Below the pieces are notes generated by a model. That model searched no databases. It worked only from the letters and a program-made list of their open reading frames with translations, and was not told the origin of the DNA. This document shows positions 123 through 8,399 of a stretch of DNA of 8,797 bases, piece after piece; within the stretch, counting starts at the first letter, position 1; every line of letters begins with the position of its first letter. Location: positions 266,724 to 275,520 of the forward strand of contig VRVR01000031.1 in NCBI GenBank assembly GCA_009859145.1. Direction: 5' to 3'. The translations under genes and the position numbers were made by a program. The DNA is from Andalucia godoyi And28. Taxonomy: Eukaryota; Protista; Jakobida.

Positions 123-2102
123 ATGCAAGCACCAAAGCTTGTTCTCCAGCGGTGGGGGCTATATCAGATAGGAAGAACGAGATGTGATTTAAAAGTCTTT
201 CTTATTTCCCTGCAATCTTCCGCAGTTTCACGTCAGTTCCTGCGATCACGGAAGCTGCTCGCAGCCCGCATGGAGCCGCCTCCACAAAGGGCCGTGCAGT
301 ACTACAAAATCCCACAGGATGCTGTGCGGGCTTCTCCGGCACTGCAGAAACTAGACGACCTGATTGGCGTGTGTTCCGTCAAGAGGAAGCTTGTGCAGCT
401 TTTCCACTCCATCGAAATGTCGAAGCACACGGGTCTGACCGTCGATCAGAATCTGCACTCGCTGTTCGTCGGCAATCCTGGAACAGGCAAGACGACCGTC
501 GCTCGCGTGTTTGCGATGGCCCTGCGAGAAATCGGGGTGCTTCAGAGCAGTCTCATTGTTGAGAAGAGTGCTGTTGGCTACACAACCTACGAGGGCCAAA
601 AAAACTTTGACACGGATATCCAAAAGTTGCTGGATGCAAAGGGCGGCGTGCTCTTTCATCGATGACGCGTACATGCTGCAGCCGAAGACGAGCTACAACG
701 GCACGCAAATTGCGAACAAGCTGCTCGTCATCGCGGAAAGCCACCGCAGTACCATTTGCATCATTCTGGCTGGGTACGAAAAGGAGATTGACGACGAGCT
801 GCTGTCCTTTACTGCGGGTTTCTCACGCCGGTTCCCGCATCGCTTTCATTTCGAAGACTATGGACACGACGAGCTGGTGCGGATTCTAGAGCACCAGGCT
901 GCGGATCCGCAACGCACGCTCGTATTCGAGAATGAGAATGTGAAGCACGTGGTGGCTCGTCGGCTTGCTCGGCGACGGGGACAGCGCGGGTTCGGGAACG
1001 CTGGAGATGTTCGCAGTCTCATCGAGCTGTCGGTGCAAACTTTGACATACCTCGGGATGTCGCCGAGATGTGCATCAAGCACCTGGCTGGCCTTCGGTGC
1101 ATGCCCAACTTTGGGAACGCAGGAGCGGTGAAGTCCCTCGTCGCCAACGGCATTCAGAGGTATAACGATCGAACTGCAGGCGGCGGCTCGGGATCGCGCG
1201 TGCTGACGGCAGCCGATCTCGGGGTCGATGCAGCCGCACGCCAGGAGAGGATGGATTCGTTGCTGCGCAACTTTGTCGGGTCGCCGGGAATCCTGGAGAA
1301 GCTGCAGGATCTGGAGTATCGGGCACGGGAAGCGCGGCTGTTCGATCGCGATCCCCGCGACTTGATATCCCACTACAAGTTCGTTGGGAAGCCGGGCACC
1401 GGAAAGACGACGATTGCGCGTGCCATGGCATCGATTTTGCATTCTCTCGGCGTCCTGCCGTCCGACAAGTGTGTCGAGACGTCCGCATCGAGGCTGCAGA
1501 CCGAATACGTTGGACAGGCAGGGAGGCAAACGAGGGAAATGCTCCGCAGTGCGCTCGGAGGAGTTCTCTTTGTGGATGAAGCGTACGCGCTCATTCCACG
1601 ACCAGGCACATTCAACCAGGAGATCGTCGACCAGATCGTGCAGTGTCTCACCGACACCGAGTTTGTCGGGAAGATCGTGGTCATCTTTGCAGGATACGAA
1701 GCCGATGTCGAAGAGCTGATGCGCTCCAACGACGGGCTGTACCGGCGATTCAAAGAGACTTGGATATTCGAGGACTGGAGCCCCGATACGGCCACGACAG
1801 CGGCGCTCTCTGTCCTGAGAACAAGCACCAGGTGGAGTCATCTGCAGTTCCGCGATGCCGAGCGCTCGCTGCTTGCTGCATTCGAAGCGCCGTGCCGTGC
1901 ACCGAAGTGGGCCAACGGTGGCGACATCGAGACTCTATTGTCCAAATGCGACGAAAAACGAAGTGCACGCGGCAGACGAACTGCGACGATCTCGAATGTT
2001 GTATCTGTTGAAGATGTTGCAGCAGCTGCAGCGAACAAGCTAACAAGCGCAAGAGAAGAACAAGCACACACACGCTTCATTCGCAATCACGCGTTGGGTT
2101 AG
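123..2102 (+). pseudogene. Disrupted tandem AAA+ ATPase of the CbbX/SpoVK (eukaryotic triple-AAA) type; 5' start uncertain
   Basis: Three ORFs join into one protein. Module 1 has Walker A GNPGTGKTT (from 471), and Walker B GGVLFIDDAY is restored by removing one T at 654-656, followed by LAGY, SRRF, FEDY and RGFGNAGDV. At ~1038 the sequence jumps to a second lid motif (NFDIPRDVAEMCIKHLAGLRCMPNFGNAGAV). A complete module follows: GKPGTGKTT (from 1386), GGVLFVDEAY, FAGYE, YRRF, WANGGD. The stop TAG (2100-2102) lies inside the telomere-like repeat. Confidence 0.85.
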
Positions 2103-2138
2103 GGTTTTAGGGTTTTGGGTTAGGGGTTAGGGTTAGGG
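2094..2138 (+). repeat. Degenerate interstitial telomere-like repeat, 7 units
   Basis: Reads TTGGG TTAGGG TTTTAGGG TTTTGGG TTAGGGG TTAGGG TTAGGG. Three units are perfect TTAGGG, and the seven runs of 3 or more G match the G-quadruplex pattern. Confidence 0.9.
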
Positions 2139-2151
2139 TGTACTTAGCTAT

Positions 2152-2177
2152 AGGGGCCGGACCCTCCCCTTAACCCT
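2152..2177. repeat. Inverted C-rich telomere-like tract with a small hairpin
   Basis: AGGGG (2152-2156) can pair with CCCCT (2166-2170). ACCCT CCCCT TAACCCT (2161-2177) reads AGGGTTA AGGGG AGGGT on the minus strand. Confidence 0.55.
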
Positions 2178-2280
2178 GAACGCAATTCGAAATCCGCACT
2201 ACTGTAAGCATATGACTGCAGTATGCGTTTCATGACTTGTTCCTAGCTTATTTGACGTATGCCACTGCTTGCAGGTGCTG

Positions 2281-2487
2281 TTTCACGTACACCACCAAGC
2301 AGAGAGTGACCAGAAATGTGATTCAGATTTTTATAATAAACCTTCGTGGATATCAAATGTGATTTTATCACTTTACTATGTATCTCTATTAGTACGGGCT
2401 TTTGGTCGAAGTCATATAAAATCATGACATTCTATATAATAAGAACATGACAAAACACACTGAGGTACATTGCTTATATACTCAGTG
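2281..2487. other. AT-rich island with a repeated decamer and hairpins
   Basis: Hand count gives 59/180 GC (33%) at 2281-2460, versus 35/60 at 1261-1320 and 30/60 at 6301-6360. AAATGTGATT occurs at 2314-2323 and 2355-2364. Inverted repeats are GTGAT-TTT-ATCAC (2359-2371) and CACTGAG-N16-CTCAGTG (2458-2487). A TATATAA lies at 2433-2439. Confidence 0.6.
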
Positions 2488-3145
2488 ACGTGCAAGCAGC
2501 GAGGAGTTGCGTCATCGCGGCCGTACATTATCTCTCCCGCAGCATATCTCTCGGGACCGCATGTCGATCACCACCACTCTGCAGTGCTTGGCCAGAGTTC
2601 CTTTATTTGTCCTTCTCAACTACAGCTGGCGGACGTTGAACTGCATCCCTACACGAAATCATGTGTGTTTCGAAATGTCGTTCTGAGCGATGACGGCAGC
2701 TTTGCCATTCTGCACGAACCAGCACGAGCGCTTCCATCTCCGGCGTTTTGGATGCCGTCGCGACACATTGGCGGCTATGATACGGACGGACCTGTATTCA
2801 AATATCGTTCGATCGAAACAGCGAGTGTGTGCAATGCACGCATTCAAACGCCTGTAATGATGATCGACCACACGCATTTCGTGAGCTGGGGCCACGCACA
2901 CAACGAGGTTCTTCTGCAGGCTCTGACAGCCTTATGGATCGGCGCAGATCAATGGACTGTACGACGACCATCATGCGCTCGTGCTTGTTATTTACCCGCC
3001 GTACTGCATCTACGATGACTTTCCCGGCAACGTCGCAGCGCAAATGCATCAAAAACAGTGGAAAGTAATGGCAACTCCAACAGATGACGAAGAAGAAATC
3101 ATTGAGGCCATTCTGCTCGAAATGCTCGCAATCGACGCGAATTGA
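2470..3145 (+). pseudogene. Fragment of a probable GT61/DUF563-like glycosyltransferase
   Basis: SCVFRNVVL (from 2659) and SWGHAHNEVLLQAL (from 2884) resemble the N-terminal C-x-F-R-N and N/W-x-x-H-x-x-x-D/E motifs of GT61 enzymes (EOGT/POMGNT2-like). Removing one G at 2941-2942 gives LWIAQINGLYDDHHALVLVIYPPYC...EMLAIDAN to TGA at 3143-3145. There is no ATG, signal anchor or C-terminal HGAG motif. Confidence 0.5.
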
Positions 3146-3198
3146 CATTTGAGAATGTATGATATCGTCTGTCGTACGCGCTTCCCACTCTCGCATGA

Positions 3199-3623
3199 GT
3201 CATTGATGCAAAAATTGCGTTCTTGTCCATCTTGTTTACTGTGGGATATCAGTTTCTCATCCGGAAGGCTTCGTCATCGTTGAAAGTCAGCGGACTGAAC
3301 TTGTGTACCATGCTCTTCCGTACTCTACCGCAATTCTGCTGGTATTATGTCCGTTTGCAGACCCACTGCTCTCTTCGCAGGTCAGTTGGACTCCAACGCT
3401 GGTTACACAGATTCTCACAACGTGCTTCTTGTCGATTGTTCTCAACTGGTCGCTGTTTGCACTCCTCGGCTCCGTCTCACCGGTGACGTTCAATGTCATG
3501 GGACATGCAAAGACCGTTGCTGTGCTGCTTTTGGCATTCCTGTACTTTGGCGAAGCTTGCTCAACGCAAAAACTCTGCGGATTGGTCGTCGCTGTTGTTG
3601 GAATGATTGTATTTTCAAGATGA
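3199..3623 (+). pseudogene. C-terminal part of a nucleotide-sugar transporter (SLC35E/TPT family, UXT/URGT-like)
   Basis: IAFLSILFTVGYQFLIRKASSSLKVSGLNL is followed by a 1-nt loss at ~3303-3305 and then (L/V)YHALPYSTAILL...SCFL-like TCFLSIVLNWS...SPVTFNVMGHAKTVAVLL...GLVVAVVGMIVFS*. This matches the family pattern SCxxAxxVNxS...SPVTYQVLGHLKT. An in-frame TGA sits at 3196-3198 and the N-terminal half is not recognisable. Confidence 0.85.
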
Positions 3624-3859
3624 GGAGCAGCAGCTCTTCTGCATGCGTTCATGTTGTTTTAACCCTCTCTCTCCAACTTCCATCCGTTTCTATTTTCGTA
3701 CTATAGAAGCTGTTAATAGACAGGTGTTTTTCTTCTTTCCCCCTAATCATGAAACCCAAATGTTGGGGCAGCGACATGCTTGGCTCAATCCTTCATCGAA
3801 GCAGCGTAAAGTTGGCACAACCTGCTCATCAAGACCTCCTTAATGAAGATTCGAGGAAT

Positions 3860-3887
3860 CCCGAATAGGCCTCCCGAATAGGCCTCC
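3860..3887 (+). repeat. Perfect 13-bp tandem direct repeat
   Basis: CCCGAATAGGCCT occurs twice (3860-3872 and 3873-3885) plus CC, 3 nt from the DUF707 stop codon. Confidence 0.9.
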
Positions 3888-3890
3888 TGT

Positions 3891-4913
3891 CTAGGGTTGT
3901 TGCGAGTTGACACATCGGTCGGACGGCTCGATGGGGCGAACTTCTTTGGGAACAGTCATTTTGATACCGGTGCGCCGTTCGACCAGTCCCATTTCATACA
4001 TTGCTCGTTCAACGAACTGGGTGTCGCTGGACATTGTCTTGAACGATATGTGATAGACAGGCATACTGCTGAGCACTGCAACTCGGGCAGAGTAGCCGGA
4101 AGCAGCAGCCAGGTAGTGGAATCCAAGGTCATAGCCGTATCCGCTCCCGAGATCAAACTGCATCATCGGGTACACATACTTTTCGTAGAACGGCACGAGA
4201 ACACAGGCGCCATTACTTCGACGAAATTCGTGAACAGGGCCAAGCGTAGTCTCTGGCTTGTATCCTATCACTGGTCGCCAGCCGTTTCCGTCGACTGCCG
4301 GTTGAGCAGCATCGATGCAAAACTCCGTCATCCAGGCGACAAACTTTGGGGCGTCAAAGTCTCTCCCATCAAGGTCCTCATCGAACAGAAAGACGAAGCG
4401 GTAGTTCTAGAGCACAAAAGGATGGACAAATCGCTTGATGAACCACCATTTCGGTTGGTGCAGCGATCGAATGATCGTTGCTCGACTTGCAAATTCACTC
4501 CAATCGCTATCATCCCACACGAAAAGAAGCACATCGTAGTTCTTCGCGGGAAACTTTGTCAGCATGATCCGTACGAGATCTTTGGACCGATGCCCAACTG
4601 GAATCGCCAGCAAACCATCCATTTGTGGAAGCGGGACACCGCGCGGACCTTGAAGTCTCTGCAATCGATGGTAGTTGCCCTTTTCGCCTTCTTCGAAGAG
4701 TGGTGCACACCATGATGAAGAAAAAGACGATGACGACGAAGGATGATCGTGGCCATGTATAGATTCTTCTGCAACTCTACGTCTCAATGACAGCGGATCC
4801 AAAGCTTGTGACGATGGCTGACTTGCGTGCCGGAATGACAACACACAAACCAGGGCCACAATCGCCAGGCCAAACAGGAAGAAATTGGGGGACCGTGGGG
4901 ATGTCCAGCGCAT
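3891..4913 (-). pseudogene. DUF707-family type II membrane protein (predicted GT-A glycosyltransferase-like) with one in-frame TAG
   Basis: ORFs 4407..4952 and 3891..4331 share one frame. ATG is at 4913, followed by the anchor FFLFGLAIVALVCVLSF. Family motifs are LLAIPVG, LLFVWD, QPKWWFIKRFVHP, then TAG (4407-4409), then NYRFVFLFDEDL (DxD), AQPAV and GYGYD. These correspond to plant DUF707 LLAMPVG / QTKWWFAKRFLHP / IFLWDEDL / SQPAL / GWGLD. Confidence 0.85.
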
Positions 4914-5210
4914 TGCAAACGATTCTATCCTCGTCTTTTTTTCGATTTTCAATTTTTTTGTTTAGGTTTGGTTGGTTGTTGTTTCCCCTTTTCTCAAAAT
5001 GATGATCGTTGTGGCGTCTTTTGGGTGTTTTTGAACGAGTGAACTTGAGGCCGAGGGATGGGGAAAACCATGGGATGGATGGCGGATTCTGGCATCACTT
5101 GATGCAATTGTGTCCGTTTTCACCTCTTGTGAATTTTGTGACAAAAGAAGCCTGGTGTGAAATCTGAGGAAGTTTCTTGTTTTATTAACAATGAGCGAGA
5201 GGGCGTGGAG
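4914..5210. promoter_or_regulatory. Divergent intergenic region (putative bidirectional promoter)
   Basis: 297 bp between the head-to-head ATGs at 4913 (-) and 5211 (+). It contains T-rich tracts and the interrupted palindrome TTTTGT-G-ACAAAA (5134-5146). Confidence 0.4.
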
Positions 5211-8200
5211 ATGGCAAAGATCATCGTCAAGGTCTTTTCATTGTCCCGGCGCGGCCAGGAACCATTTCGTGTGCTGAATGGTCCCGCATCACTTGAATGT
5301 GATTCATTCGAGACAGACATTGATGTGATTGCAAAGACTGCGGCTGACGATGTTCAGATAAAAGACTATCTTCGTGGTGCATATGCTGTTCGATGCATGA
5401 CAAAGCTGCCTGGTCTGTGCTCGATCCCTTTGCGATTCACCTCCAATGAAGGAGGAGCCGGTTCAAGCGAACGTGCTGATCTGTGGTGCAAGTGTGCTGT
5501 TCAGAGGACTGCATCCGTCGATGGTCGATTTGTACACAATAATGGAGACGCAGAATTCGTTACAACGCTTGATGACTTCAACGAACGATTTCCACAGATT
5601 TCAAGCGAGCAGGTTCTTGGAGATCTTGTGCAGGTTCATCGCACAGCGTCTGCGAATGTGTATGTGTATCTTGTTCTCGAACCCGCGCATTCGGAGCCTC
5701 CTGTTCGTCCAACATCTCAAATCGAAGAAGCGTTCTCGAGACACACTCTCGAGGAGTCTTTCGCGCAGAGAGTGAGCAAGATGGCCGACAATCTGGTGGC
5801 TGACTTTTGCGTTCTCAACGTTCTTGATCACCAGAGAAGGAAATGGTTTCTTGGCGAGAGCCTGCTGAAGGAATTACCAATCACGTGCTGCGAAACCAAC
5901 TCAACTGTGGAAAATCCGTCCTTTGTCGACATGCTCATGCCGTATGTGGGGACTGTCGAGGAGTACTGGAAAGCACTCAACAGTCAGACTGGTGCTGCTT
6001 CTGAACAGTGTTCGAAACGCGTGGTTGCTGTCGCACAAGCATCCGGCAGTGGAAAAACCCGTCTTTCCTATGCGCTTGGGCAAAACAATGCGCTCGTGAT
6101 AGTGATTCGCATTGCTATGCAGCTGACCGAAGGACTCGCCCCACCTTGGGAGCAGTGGCAACGTCATGTGCAGAAAGCTCATCGGCTCGACAGAGGAAAT
6201 CATCCTCGGCATGTGGCTTCGTTTGCAATGGCGAGTCTCCGTTTGCTCGTGGCCACGTATGTGGAGTGGGTTGCCGAAGTTCTGAAAGCGCTCTCGGACC
6301 GCAAATTTGATTCTGAGAGCGTTTTCAGAGAAGCTGCACTGCGCTCGCTGCGAAATGGCAGTGGAGATCGTGGTGTGCTTTCGCTGTTCAACGAACGCAT
6401 GCGGTCTTTTTTCCCAGATGGATATACTGGCATCCAGAATGAGAATGAGGATATGATGATGGATGACGTGCGAGAGGCCGTGAAGAAACATGTTGCTGTT
6501 GTGGATGAACGCCTACGCAAAATTGTTGGCACGCAGGAAACCATTGTGATTTCGTACGACGAGGTTCAGTTCTTGTTGGATGTGCTGCAGAATACGTTTT
6601 ATCCGCTGGGCGAGTGGAACGGGTCGCAAGACGCAGGGGCGCCGACTCGATCCGCGTTTCATGGATTGATAGCGTTAATGCCGTCGCTGTTGGATGGCGT
6701 TGGATGGCGACAGAGCATGTGCGGCACGTACTTTCAGATCTCGGCCGAAGCGGTTTCCAAGCTTTCGCCCATTGCTCATCGTGTGCATCCGATGTATCAC
6801 ACGTCCGTCATCGAAGTGAATGACATGAAAGCATCGCTGGAGACATTTTTCCGTTTCCAGCCGGGCTTCTTTGAACGTGAAGAGGTACGCTTGTGTCTAT
6901 CATTTTTGCGTGGTCGACCGAAATTCTTTTTTGGACATGCGTGGACAAGCTGCATCTGGATCGAGCTGACGGCGCGCACGGGTAACTCCACAGAAGGTAT
7001 TGATGAGCTCGTGCTTCGTGGATTGCAAAAGGCTGTTGAGGAGTTGAAGCGAGAACGTACCGCTGACATCCGATCGCTGTGGATTTCAAACCCAAAATTG
7101 ATTGCTAGCACTCCTCATGTGACCACCTCCTTGTTTTGCCAAGAGCTGTATGCGTCGCTGAAGCTGAGTGGAGGTCATCTTTTGACCTCTGGACAGGAAG
7201 GCGATGTTGTGCGGTACGGAATATTTGCCTTTCATCCTTCTGCTGGTGTTGATCTTGATTTGCGCAATGAGCCGGCGACAGTCGACGCACTGCTGTTTGT
7301 TGGCGATTCCCTTGTGCTGAAGTCAGAGCAGGGCGTTTCGCAAGTTGAGACCTCGTCGAAGAGGGGTGATGCCGATCCTATTTTGTCCCTTCTCGAAAGG
7401 TACACCGCCACGACAAGCATTGCCGGTTTTCATTTCACAACGAACGTGAAGGGTGGTGTGTGGGAATTGGCCTTTGTGTGGCACATCCTGCGTCGTCGAA
7501 TCATTCAGCAGAAAGCAAAAAGCACACTAACACTGCATTCTCTCTTTTCCCCGCTATGCGCTGCCAATTTTGTTCTACCGGATGCGCTTCATCAATGGGA
7601 AGTCATAGCAGACGAAGGCTGGAACGCCAGCTCCCTCGTAGCCTCCAGAAATGACGATGACGACGATGGCGATGCTGATGATGATGATGATGATGATGAT
7701 GACGACGACGATGATGACGACGATGATGGTGATGATGATGATGTTGTTGGTGTGACTACGCATTTCCACATGTTGCTCAACAGTCGTGATGCGACACGTA
7801 AGGTCATGTACAGTGTGGACAGGTACGCTGGGGCAGACGTTTTGTTTCTCGCGACGCACAGCGACAATCGTCATGAACGGATTCTCGTCAGTGTGCAGTG
7901 CAAAGCAGAAAAGAGGAGCTCGCTCCGAGAATGCCTGCGAAGCAGTTCTCCAGCGTGGCAATTCACAACCAAGTCACAGCGGGCGGCGGTGTTGAACGGC
8001 GTGAGAGTCCTTTCATTTAACGAACAGAAGAAGGTGTCGAAAACGAAGACAAAGAAGACGAAGGTGAAAGCAGTTAAGGGGTGGTCGAAGAAGAGAGAGG
8101 CGTTCTGTTCGTTGTGGCTTGAGGATCCGTTTGTTTTCGAGCATGCGGTCCGCGTCGCTCTGGCTGTGAATGACTACTCAACTGGAACTGCGGAAGCAAT

Positions 8201-8399
8201 CACGAAGCTGAACAGCGATTACTCCGCAGACGAGTGGTCGCCAATCGTTCTTTGCAGAAGTTCCGCCACTGCTTTCGGTCCGCTGCATGATGCAGTGGCG
8301 CGAGCTTGCGCCGGGGAGCAGACATCCAACACTTCAGACCGTGCATTTCTCTTACCTCAGACTGCCAGCAAGGTTGCTCTTTCACAGATTGACAAGTGA
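5211..8399 (+). CDS. Crinkler/RHS-type (CR) protein: N-terminal header, P-loop NTPase and PD-(D/E)xK restriction-endonuclease-like domain, 1062 aa
   Basis: Uninterrupted ORF from the first ATG (5211) to TGA (8397-8399). Motifs: VYVYLVLEP (5658-5684, HVLVxxP-like); Walker A QASGSGKTR (6036-6062); Walker B IVISYDE (6543-6563); GRP (6912-6920); core helix GGVWELAF; GAD (D at 7836-7838) followed by VSVQCK (Q 7896, K 7902). This is the NTPase+REase core described for CR proteins. Confidence 0.75.
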   Translation: MAKIIVKVFSLSRRGQEPFRVLNGPASLECDSFETDIDVIAKTAADDVQIKDYLRGAYAVRCMTKLPGLCSIPLRFTSNEGGAGSSERADLWCKCAVQRTASVDGRFVHNNGDAEFVTTLDDFNERFPQISSEQVLGDLVQVHRTASANVYVYLVLEPAHSEPPVRPTSQIEEAFSRHTLEESFAQRVSKMADNLVADFCVLNVLDHQRRKWFLGESLLKELPITCCETNSTVENPSFVDMLMPYVGTVEEYWKALNSQTGAASEQCSKRVVAVAQASGSGKTRLSYALGQNNALVIVIRIAMQLTEGLAPPWEQWQRHVQKAHRLDRGNHPRHVASFAMASLRLLVATYVEWVAEVLKALSDRKFDSESVFREAALRSLRNGSGDRGVLSLFNERMRSFFPDGYTGIQNENEDMMMDDVREAVKKHVAVVDERLRKIVGTQETIVISYDEVQFLLDVLQNTFYPLGEWNGSQDAGAPTRSAFHGLIALMPSLLDGVGWRQSMCGTYFQISAEAVSKLSPIAHRVHPMYHTSVIEVNDMKASLETFFRFQPGFFEREEVRLCLSFLRGRPKFFFGHAWTSCIWIELTARTGNSTEGIDELVLRGLQKAVEELKRERTADIRSLWISNPKLIASTPHVTTSLFCQELYASLKLSGGHLLTSGQEGDVVRYGIFAFHPSAGVDLDLRNEPATVDALLFVGDSLVLKSEQGVSQVETSSKRGDADPILSLLERYTATTSIAGFHFTTNVKGGVWELAFVWHILRRRIIQQKAKSTLTLHSLFSPLCAANFVLPDALHQWEVIADEGWNASSLVASRNDDDDDGDADDDDDDDDDDDDDDDDDGDDDDVVGVTTHFHMLLNSRDATRKVMYSVDRYAGADVLFLATHSDNRHERILVSVQCKAEKRSSLRECLRSSSPAWQFTTKSQRAAVLNGVRVLSFNEQKKVSKTKTKKTKVKAVKGWSKKREAFCSLWLEDPFVFEHAVRVALAVNDYSTGTAEAITKLNSDYSADEWSPIVLCRSSATAFGPLHDAVARACAGEQTSNTSDRAFLLPQTASKVALSQIDK
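7653..7742 (+). repeat. In-frame GAT/GAC trinucleotide tract encoding 27 Asp in 30 codons
   Basis: Encodes D5-G-D-A-D17-G-D4 within the CR ORF. Confidence 0.95.

Follow-up and report, generated by a model that had tools for sequence, protein, structure and literature searches.

A gene of the jakobid Andalucia godoyi encoding a P-loop NTPase with a predicted nuclease-like C-terminal domain

We analysed a stretch of 8,797 nucleotides (nt), hereafter called the window, from VRVR00000000, the draft nuclear genome of the free-living jakobid Andalucia godoyi, which comprises 20 Mb, is compact and largely lacks introns (PMC7050145). The window harbors a gene (nt 5211-8399) for which we slightly favor one explanation over the others taken together, namely that its product is an intracellular nuclease gated by nucleoside triphosphates (NTPs), which belongs to an undescribed protist family and functions as a conflict or defence factor. 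According to this proposal the protein would be composed of three parts, a variable N-terminus, a P-loop NTPase of the AAA+/STAND-like type and a C-terminal PD-(D/E)xK nuclease with the Mrr-like configuration 'D...QxK'. We infer that binding and hydrolysis of NTP would control the assembly or the conformation of the protein, that the state of the NTPase would thereby gate the action of the nuclease on intracellular nucleic acid, and that the variable N-terminus would serve as a recognition or targeting module. The role of the protein would lie in conflict or defence, directed against viruses, transposons or other invading DNA. Such an architecture would be shared with the core of Crinkler/RHS proteins, which consists of an NTPase, in part a helix-turn-helix (HTH) region, and a restriction endonuclease (REase), and also with prokaryotic STAND-nuclease defence proteins. 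An intracellular role was preferred to secretion because hydropathy analysis of the window protein disclosed neither a hydrophobic N-terminal stretch nor a transmembrane-like segment, and because the host is a free-living bacterivore. A first reading of the same DNA, made from its letters alone (the original prediction), had already described the protein as being without a signal peptide, which agrees with the hydropathy data.

The gene and its conserved domains

The segment 5211-8399 (+) is a single uninterrupted open reading frame (ORF) running from ATG to TGA, with 1062 codons followed by the TGA, and its start and stop are those of the annotated gene in the NCBI record (GCA_009859145.1, contig VRVR01000031.1). 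It constitutes a complete coding sequence, and the 1062-codon gene is under purifying selection. Compared with the closest relative, the protein P0001 of locus L002 (62% amino acid identity), the ratio of nonsynonymous to synonymous changes (dN/dS) was approximately 0.23 (pN 0.21, pS 0.57) over 821 codons of the shared core. The original prediction had called the gene intact and had placed all of its motifs within one ORF. Both statements were affirmed, as every motif was found at the base that had been assigned to it.

All features of the gene described below reside on the plus strand. As inferred from the alignment with its relatives, the core that is conserved throughout the family begins ahead of the P-loop with residues ~194-261 (D198, Q208, P223, G247; nt 5790-5993). 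Alignment and conservation then place strand 1 and the Walker A motif within RVVAVAQASGSGKTR (6018-6062), where QASGSGKTR corresponds to residues 276-284 and K282 is encoded at nt 6054. The Walker B motif TIVISYDEVQ (6540-6569), identified in the same way, contains D450 and E451, and its hhhhDE signature is represented by TIVISYDEV (residues 444-452). Walker A and Walker B are separated by 168 residues, most of which belong to an unusual helical insert of ~160 residues (6063-6539) with the conserved sequence LRxLRNG (R381, N382), predicted by AlphaFold2 (AF2) to form a helix bundle. About 118 residues past Walker B a GRPxFF sequence follows within LSFLRGRPKFFFG (6897-6935), a segment that stands out by its conservation, including the invariant GRP (residues 568-570), and by weak AAA_16, AAA_22 and nSTAND matches. 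Because it fits the descriptions of STAND NTPases and the AAA_16/nSTAND matches, the most plausible interpretation of GRP is that it represents the GxP lid motif known from STAND/AAA+ proteins. In the AF2 model the adjoining residues ~576-744 (6936-7442), with the conserved pair E687-P688, make up a helical linker, possibly a winged-helix or HTH region.

Conservation was counted per column in an alignment of 151 sequences with 199 domain rows, in which the motif columns contained between 108 and 123 residues. K282 was present in 112 of 113 cases, D450 and E451 in 110 and 105 of 112, respectively. Within the putative lid motif, G568 and R569 did not vary at all (123/123 each) and P570 was found in 114/123. 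Thus G279, G281, K282 and T283 of Walker A, D450 and E451 of Walker B and G568-R569-P570 are near-invariant in the family, to which R381-N382, E687-P688, K747-G748, Q917-[YF]918 and R981 can be added as further conserved positions. Since the motifs are near-invariant across the family alignment, their conservation, as far as sequences tell, reflects functional constraint and not chance.

When 50 diverse relatives were compared with Pfam (E<=10), weak matches were obtained to AAA_16 (15/50), AAA_22 (8/50), IstB_IS21 (two) and nSTAND6 (two). The only recurrent weak matches were therefore to P-loop families of the AAA+/STAND type, the best AAA_16 match having an E value of 2.4e-5, which is under the curated cut-off of 32.6 bits. 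According to the original prediction, a grouping of the NTPase with an unrelated housekeeping family would have spoken against it; no such family was matched in the Pfam search of the protein and the 50 relatives. Judged by its motifs, the protein has a genuine NTPase with a catalytically complete P-loop.

The C-terminal third had been claimed to adopt an REase fold, for which a structure prediction had been named in advance as the check. We modelled residues 690-1062 with AF2 using seven sequences, and obtained a predicted template modelling score (pTM) of 0.71 and values of the predicted local distance difference test (pLDDT) of 72-92 in the core blocks. The nuclease-like domain extends over residues ~745-1020 (7443-8270) and has a predicted alpha-beta-beta-beta-alpha-beta core. 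Helix 1 (residues 748-768), located in the conserved segment NVKGGVWELAF... (7443-7505; K747, G748), carries E752, and strand 1 is formed by residues 864-867. In the segment around AGADVLF (7818-7856), G874-x-D876 marks the start of strand 2 (877-883), with D876 (nt 7836) immediately ahead of it; conservation, model and profile alignment (see below) all single out this site. Strand 3 (890-898) contains the sequence VSVQCK (7878-7910) with Q896 and K898 (nt 7902), which is likewise conserved and comparable with Mrr, and is succeeded by helices. Right after the catalytic strands, the segment SPAWQF (7944-7973) exhibits the conserved residues Q917 and Y/F918. Strand 4 (980-985) with R981, a helix and strand 5 (1012-1016) complete the domain. 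In the model, this order of elements is the canonical PD-(D/E)xK arrangement, and the predicted catalytic residues are at the canonical places. They are also well conserved, E752 being found in 96/108, D876 in 113/119, Q896 in 104/118 and K898 in 103/119 of the aligned residues, so that E752, G874-x-D876 and Q896-x-K898 are kept in ~87-95% of members that are only 20% identical.

Position 896 is never occupied by D or E in the family, and therefore the Mrr-type configuration 'D...QxK' was tested. Mrr is an active Type IV enzyme. The Mrr protein of E. coli K-12 and 11 relatives encoded on plasmids of non-pathogens (12 sequences) revealed the same pattern, with E on helix 1, DGGxD and xQxK. By use of hhalign, a family profile of 98 sequences was aligned with the profile of these 12 Mrr sequences, and 200 column-shuffled profiles as well as a reversed profile served as controls. 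In an alignment of 32 columns, GxD of the family was paired with DGGxD and the two QxK motifs with each other, in register. Its score of 18.5 was higher than that of 200/200 shuffles (mean 10.3, standard deviation 1.8, maximum 18.2) and of the reversed control. Alignments with single E. coli proteins (Mrr, McrC and HsdR, with controls) were uninformative, and a match to Pfam Mrr_cat was not seen. The top Foldseek matches of the domain model lean to nucleases, none of them being significant. Nuclease domains of Mus81 appeared five times, and the matches in BFVD included an Orpheovirus 'Mrr-like' protein (E 0.46) and a phage 'Restriction endonuclease' (E 0.49); ORC/Cdc6 proteins were also among the weak structural matches. 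Taken together, the motifs, the predicted topology and the Mrr comparison suggest that the domain probably has a nuclease fold of Mrr-like configuration.

Several points weigh against the proposed NTP-gated nuclease. Foldseek comparisons were not significant, neither with the PDB (best E 0.29, the five Mus81 domains ranging from 0.7 to 3.5) nor with BFVD (best E 0.08). The same holds true for the hhalign comparison with Mrr (probability 1.8%, P 0.027), in which the best shuffle, 18.2, came close to the score of 18.5. The glutamine found where a second acidic residue would be expected could also indicate that catalysis is weakened or absent. Furthermore, the window protein gave no AAA_16 match in Pfam, and the suggested defence role is based on architecture and evolutionary pattern only. 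Measured against the structure prediction that had been named as the check, the claim of an REase fold was neither refuted nor established: E...GxD...QxK reside on the expected helix and strands and the AF2 topology is canonical, whereas the structural searches (E 0.08-0.29) and hhalign did not reach significance. A model of the whole protein (five sequences, mean pLDDT 54) gave Foldseek matches to RdrA, Cdc6, SAMD9 and PspGI, which were at noise level and were rejected.

Two insertions in loops of the nuclease-like domain are peculiar to the A. godoyi copy. The first one, recognized by alignment with the relatives and by its repeats, is a poly-aspartate tract of 31 residues (residues 814-844; 7650-7742). 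The second one, conspicuous in the alignment and by its composition, is the lysine-rich tract KKVSKTKTKKTKVK (residues 936-957; 8016-8081), which may possibly act as a nuclear localisation signal.

A multi-copy family with variable N-termini

Relatives of the protein were identified by an exhaustive search with a hidden Markov model (HMM) profile, for which the protein was combined with the four sequences closest to it. With a cut-off of E<=1e-3 the search yielded 374 related cluster representatives, of which 111 remained at E<=1e-30. A word-indexed homologue search was performed with the protein alone and with two profiles, one made of 50 sequences and one cleared of low-complexity sequence. 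It returned 4-6 relatives versus the 374 clusters, and missed even sequences of its own query alignment. An apparent 'orphan' status derived from such a search is untrustworthy. Out of 30 clusters sampled, none had a functional name, the most informative label being 'hypothetical protein'; 28 comprised only metagenome or read-set assemblies, one was a EukProt entry derived from a transcriptome (TSA GILJ01), and the remaining one had a member co-listed in NCBI. The window protein matched no Pfam family at the curated threshold, the PADLOC models gave no match, and searches of PDB sequences with family profiles disclosed similarity at the P-loop level only and no nuclease. The family is large, rapidly diversifying, often multi-copy, and absent from Pfam, PADLOC and the searched literature.

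The viral contig collection and a first metagenome scan did not contain relatives. Scanning of metagenomes provided 14 loci, eight of which originated from the assembly Ga0208629 and represent ~7 distinct copies, 33-82% identical, in one environmental eukaryote. All of these copies are open where the contig allows, and their motifs are kept. They adjoin genes for a RabGAP-TBC protein, a protein with a tRNA-editing domain and DUF3752. Because RabGAP-TBC and other eukaryotic genes are the neighbours of the Ga0208629 copies, the family is eukaryotic. Two of the Ga0208629 loci, L009 (8537-12696) and L011 (1131-5404), share a unit of 4.3 kb with 85% identity, sharp ends and unrelated flanks, which takes in ~1.2 kb upstream of the gene copy. 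At the ends of this unit neither terminal inverted repeats nor a target-site duplication were found. In locus L001 (3834-6847), the gene of P0002, which is 46% identical, undergoes a change of frame close to its 3' end, so that ~100 C-terminal residues are encoded in another frame (6392-6847). This is due either to decay of the copy or to an assembly error.

The N-terminal header of the A. godoyi protein (residues 1-175; 5211-5735) was found elsewhere only in P0002 of L001, which was matched by tblastn over residues 4-924 with 44% identity. The header by itself is ~30% identical to that of P0002 in blastp. P0001, which is 62% identical to the A. godoyi protein, has an unrelated, coiled-coil-like N-terminus that meets the shared core at about residue 175. 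In the whole-protein AF2 model the header reached pLDDT values of 25-45, and values below 50 extended over residues 1-178. Near its end (residues 150-158; 5658-5684) we noticed a strand-plus-proline motif, VYVYLVLEP, corresponding to HVYLIMEP in L001. Among 31 members with at least 60 residues ahead of the core, the N-termini fell into 26 unrelated BLAST clusters. Many other members are almost devoid of a header, and in most of the family Walker A is preceded by just 75-130 residues. The family has thus undergone both a lineage-specific multi-copy expansion (~7 copies in Ga0208629) and a shuffling of N-termini (26 types in 31 members).

These properties raise the question of a relationship to the Crinkler/RHS (CR) group, of which the original prediction had made the protein a divergent member. 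CR proteins consist of a header and, C-terminal to it, enzymatic modules, are encoded by multi-copy families, occur in free-living eukaryotes as well, and include the RHS proteins of trypanosomes (PMC5289972, PMC11064341, PMC6131194). Their header either has a ubiquitin-like (Ubl) fold with LxLFLAK and ends with HVLVxxP, or is of another type (PMC5289972, PMC11064341, PMC6131194); HVLVxxP was defined as the junction motif of Crinklers (CRNs) in PMC11064341. The commonest CR C-terminus is composed of NTPase, HTH and REase, as given in the summary of Zhang et al. 2016 in PMC5289972. Of these modules, the NTPase is clear in the A. godoyi protein, while the REase is indicated by motifs and predicted topology, Foldseek and hhalign being not significant. 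The core and the variable N-terminus are consistent with the earlier assignment. At the level of known families the assignment is unproven: Pfam RHSP (PF07999) and Crinkler matched neither the window protein nor any of the 50 diverse relatives, even at E<=10.

A true CR protein would use a Ubl-type header for delivery, followed by an HVLVxxP-like junction and an NTPase-HTH-REase toxin core acting against prey, competitors or hosts. We consider this unlikely, although the architecture equals the commonest CR C-terminus (PMC5289972), the family is multi-copy with variable N-termini, and the header ends with VYVYLVLEP (HVYLIMEP in L001) just ahead of the junction at which the unrelated N-terminus of P0001 joins the core. 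The fit of both sequences to HVLVxxP is inexact, as the proline is one position later; the likeness to the CRN motif is a resemblance only, and for so short a motif it may be due to chance. No LxLFLAK was noted on reading the header sequence. In addition to the missing Pfam matches, the header model is of low confidence in AF2, most members have little or no header, and A. godoyi is a free-living bacterivore whose protein has no visible secretion signal.

That the C-terminal domain lacks nuclease activity is, in our opinion, quite unlikely. In that case the protein would be a scaffold or regulator driven by its NTPase, or a lineage-specific factor of DNA metabolism, in which E, D and QxK would be needed for binding or structure. 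The lack of significant nuclease matches with Foldseek and hhalign, position 896 never being D or E, and the occurrence of ORC/Cdc6 among the weak structural matches could be explained in this way. However, E752, D876 and K898 are kept in ~87-95% of members with only 20% identity, and active Mrr-type enzymes have the same QxK configuration. Moreover, housekeeping factors are rarely multi-copy with 26 different N-termini and at the same time absent from the named reference proteomes.

The locus and its neighbours

The surroundings of the gene were studied on ~23 kb (L005; the gene and ±10 kb around it), in which the window corresponds to positions 4791-13587. It is exactly the piece between two scaffold gaps, represented by N-runs at 4664-4790 and 13588-15049 of L005, the downstream gap starting ~400 nt past the stop codon. 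The presence of gaps on both sides hints at repeats around the locus that the assembly did not resolve. The original prediction had assumed a subtelomere-like setting, for which the data gave no indication. The gene is located ~28.4 kb from the end of a scaffold of 303,515 nt, and the 23 kb available contain neither telomere-type repeats nor domains of retroelements or transposases, nor a second copy of the family. An Rfam search of the window gave no match. In these respects, i.e. retroelement domains, tandem copies and telomere-type repeats within ±10 kb, the locus does not resemble the setting of trypanosome RHS genes. Subtelomeric scaffolds with transposon/viral-like sequence were omitted from the main assembly of A. 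godoyi (PMC7050145), and therefore the true chromosome ends cannot be judged from this assembly record.

An intact gene beside decayed ones had been reported previously, and this was corroborated. Nucleotides 123-2102 (+) of the window contain a tandem AAA ATPase gene of the CbxX/AAA_lid_6 type in three overlapping frames, the first switch between frames being due to a shift by 1 nt within Walker B (GGVLF|IDDAY, ~nt 655-660). It is either a pseudogene or reflects a homopolymer error in the 454-based assembly. A DUF707 gene, whose product has a hydrophobic segment at its N-terminus, occupies one frame of the minus strand (3891-4952); apart from one in-frame TAG (4407-4409) it is apparently full length. 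The single-base lesions of the AAA and DUF707 genes may be sequencing errors. Of a TPT/EamA-type transporter, a type specific for sugar phosphates or nucleotide sugars, just the C-terminal end is encoded at 3303-3623 (+), where ~80 residues match positions 213-291 of the Pfam profile (291 in total); the remainder is not in frame. None of these three genes has a gene call in the NCBI record. Further away, L005 contains large Kelch/Roc and Roc-domain (ROCO-like) genes at 1101-4663 and 19153-21624, and an unannotated ORF of 412 amino acids without a Pfam match at 16980-18218 (-).

The suggestion that the gene is, or was until recently, a mobile unit derived from a transposon-like NTPase-REase pair is very improbable: prokaryotic NTPase-REase pairs are linked to transposable elements, relatives show weak IstB_IS21 and AAA_22 matches, transposon/viral-like subtelomeric scaffolds are reported for A. 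godoyi (PMC7050145), L009 and L011 share their sharply bounded unit and the gene lies among damaged genes beside assembly gaps, but no terminal inverted or direct repeats surround the gene in the window, the ends of the L009/L011 unit show neither hallmark of transposition looked for, no transposase, integrase or reverse transcriptase was detected in any flank examined, neither the ±10 kb nor the viral contig collection provided another copy, and the Ga0208629 copies are old and diverged (33-82% identity) instead of near-identical. The original notion of a still-mobile unit was not supported, as the comparison of flanks disclosed no repeats, no nearby second copy and no transposase or reverse transcriptase beside the copies examined.

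Comparison with known systems

An NTPase fused to an REase-type nuclease in a conflict-like family is a kind of protein that is already known; of this protist family no description was found in Pfam, PADLOC or the searched literature. A more far-reaching idea, which we put forward only tentatively, is that the A. godoyi protein might be the first member from a named genome of a large family of STAND-like NTPases with Mrr-type nucleases, forming an NLR-like immune or anti-selfish-DNA system in free-living eukaryotes, and possibly a counterpart in free-living Discoba, or an intermediate, that links prokaryotic NTPase-nuclease defence to Crinkler/RHS. If the favored explanation of an NTP-gated nuclease were true, free-living protists would carry widespread, diversifying NTP-gated nucleases that are absent from domain databases, and jakobids would follow the same 'NTPase plus nuclease' principle as bacterial antiviral systems and Crinkler/RHS proteins. 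Jakobids matter for the reconstruction of early eukaryotes, and since A. godoyi can be cultured and its genome has been sequenced, it offers a handle on such proteins outside pathogens. Should the nuclease be inactive or the family have a housekeeping role, this would be one more orphan P-loop family.

Mrr (Pfam Mrr_cat; EcoKMrr) and the nuclease-like domain share an unusual configuration of the predicted active site, made up of E on helix 1, a G-x-D that opens strand 2, and an h-Q-x-K within strand 3; the spacing is similar as well (16 vs 20 residues). The two profiles were aligned in register, and an Mrr-like protein was among the top Foldseek matches. This likeness is at the level of motifs only (32 columns, probability 1.8%). 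The jakobid domain is larger, is interrupted by insertions and is joined to an NTPase; in Mrr, the N-terminal part is a winged-helix DNA-binding domain.

With prokaryotic NTPase-effector proteins of the STAND/AAA+ type (AAA_16, nSTAND; PMC7159879), which function in conflicts, the jakobid protein would share an AAA_16-like P-loop core, a GxP-type lid, a fused effector of the nuclease type and a variable region. The logic of an NTP-gated effector, as proposed for the jakobid protein, would be common to both. On the other hand, the protist family is eukaryotic and lacks sensor repeats, and its Walker A and Walker B motifs are separated by a long helical insert; its Pfam matches are sub-threshold in the relatives and missing in the window protein, and PADLOC gave no match.

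In CR proteins the elements follow one another in the same order, with the variable header first, then the P-loop NTPase and the helical linker, and at the C-terminus the nuclease-like domain with E/D/(Q)xK. Like them, the protist family is multi-copy and diversifying, occurs in free-living eukaryotes and has, in the A. godoyi protein, a possible junction motif that resembles HVLVxxP inexactly. A. godoyi belongs to Discoba, as do the trypanosomes that possess RHS proteins. They differ in that the A. godoyi protein has no Pfam RHSP or Crinkler match and no LxLFLAK, many members of its family are headerless, and for A. godoyi there is no pathogen context. Moreover, CRNs have a conserved header and a variable C-terminus, whereas the protist family has a conserved core and a variable N-terminus. 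It is reasonable to say that the protein works like a CR core.

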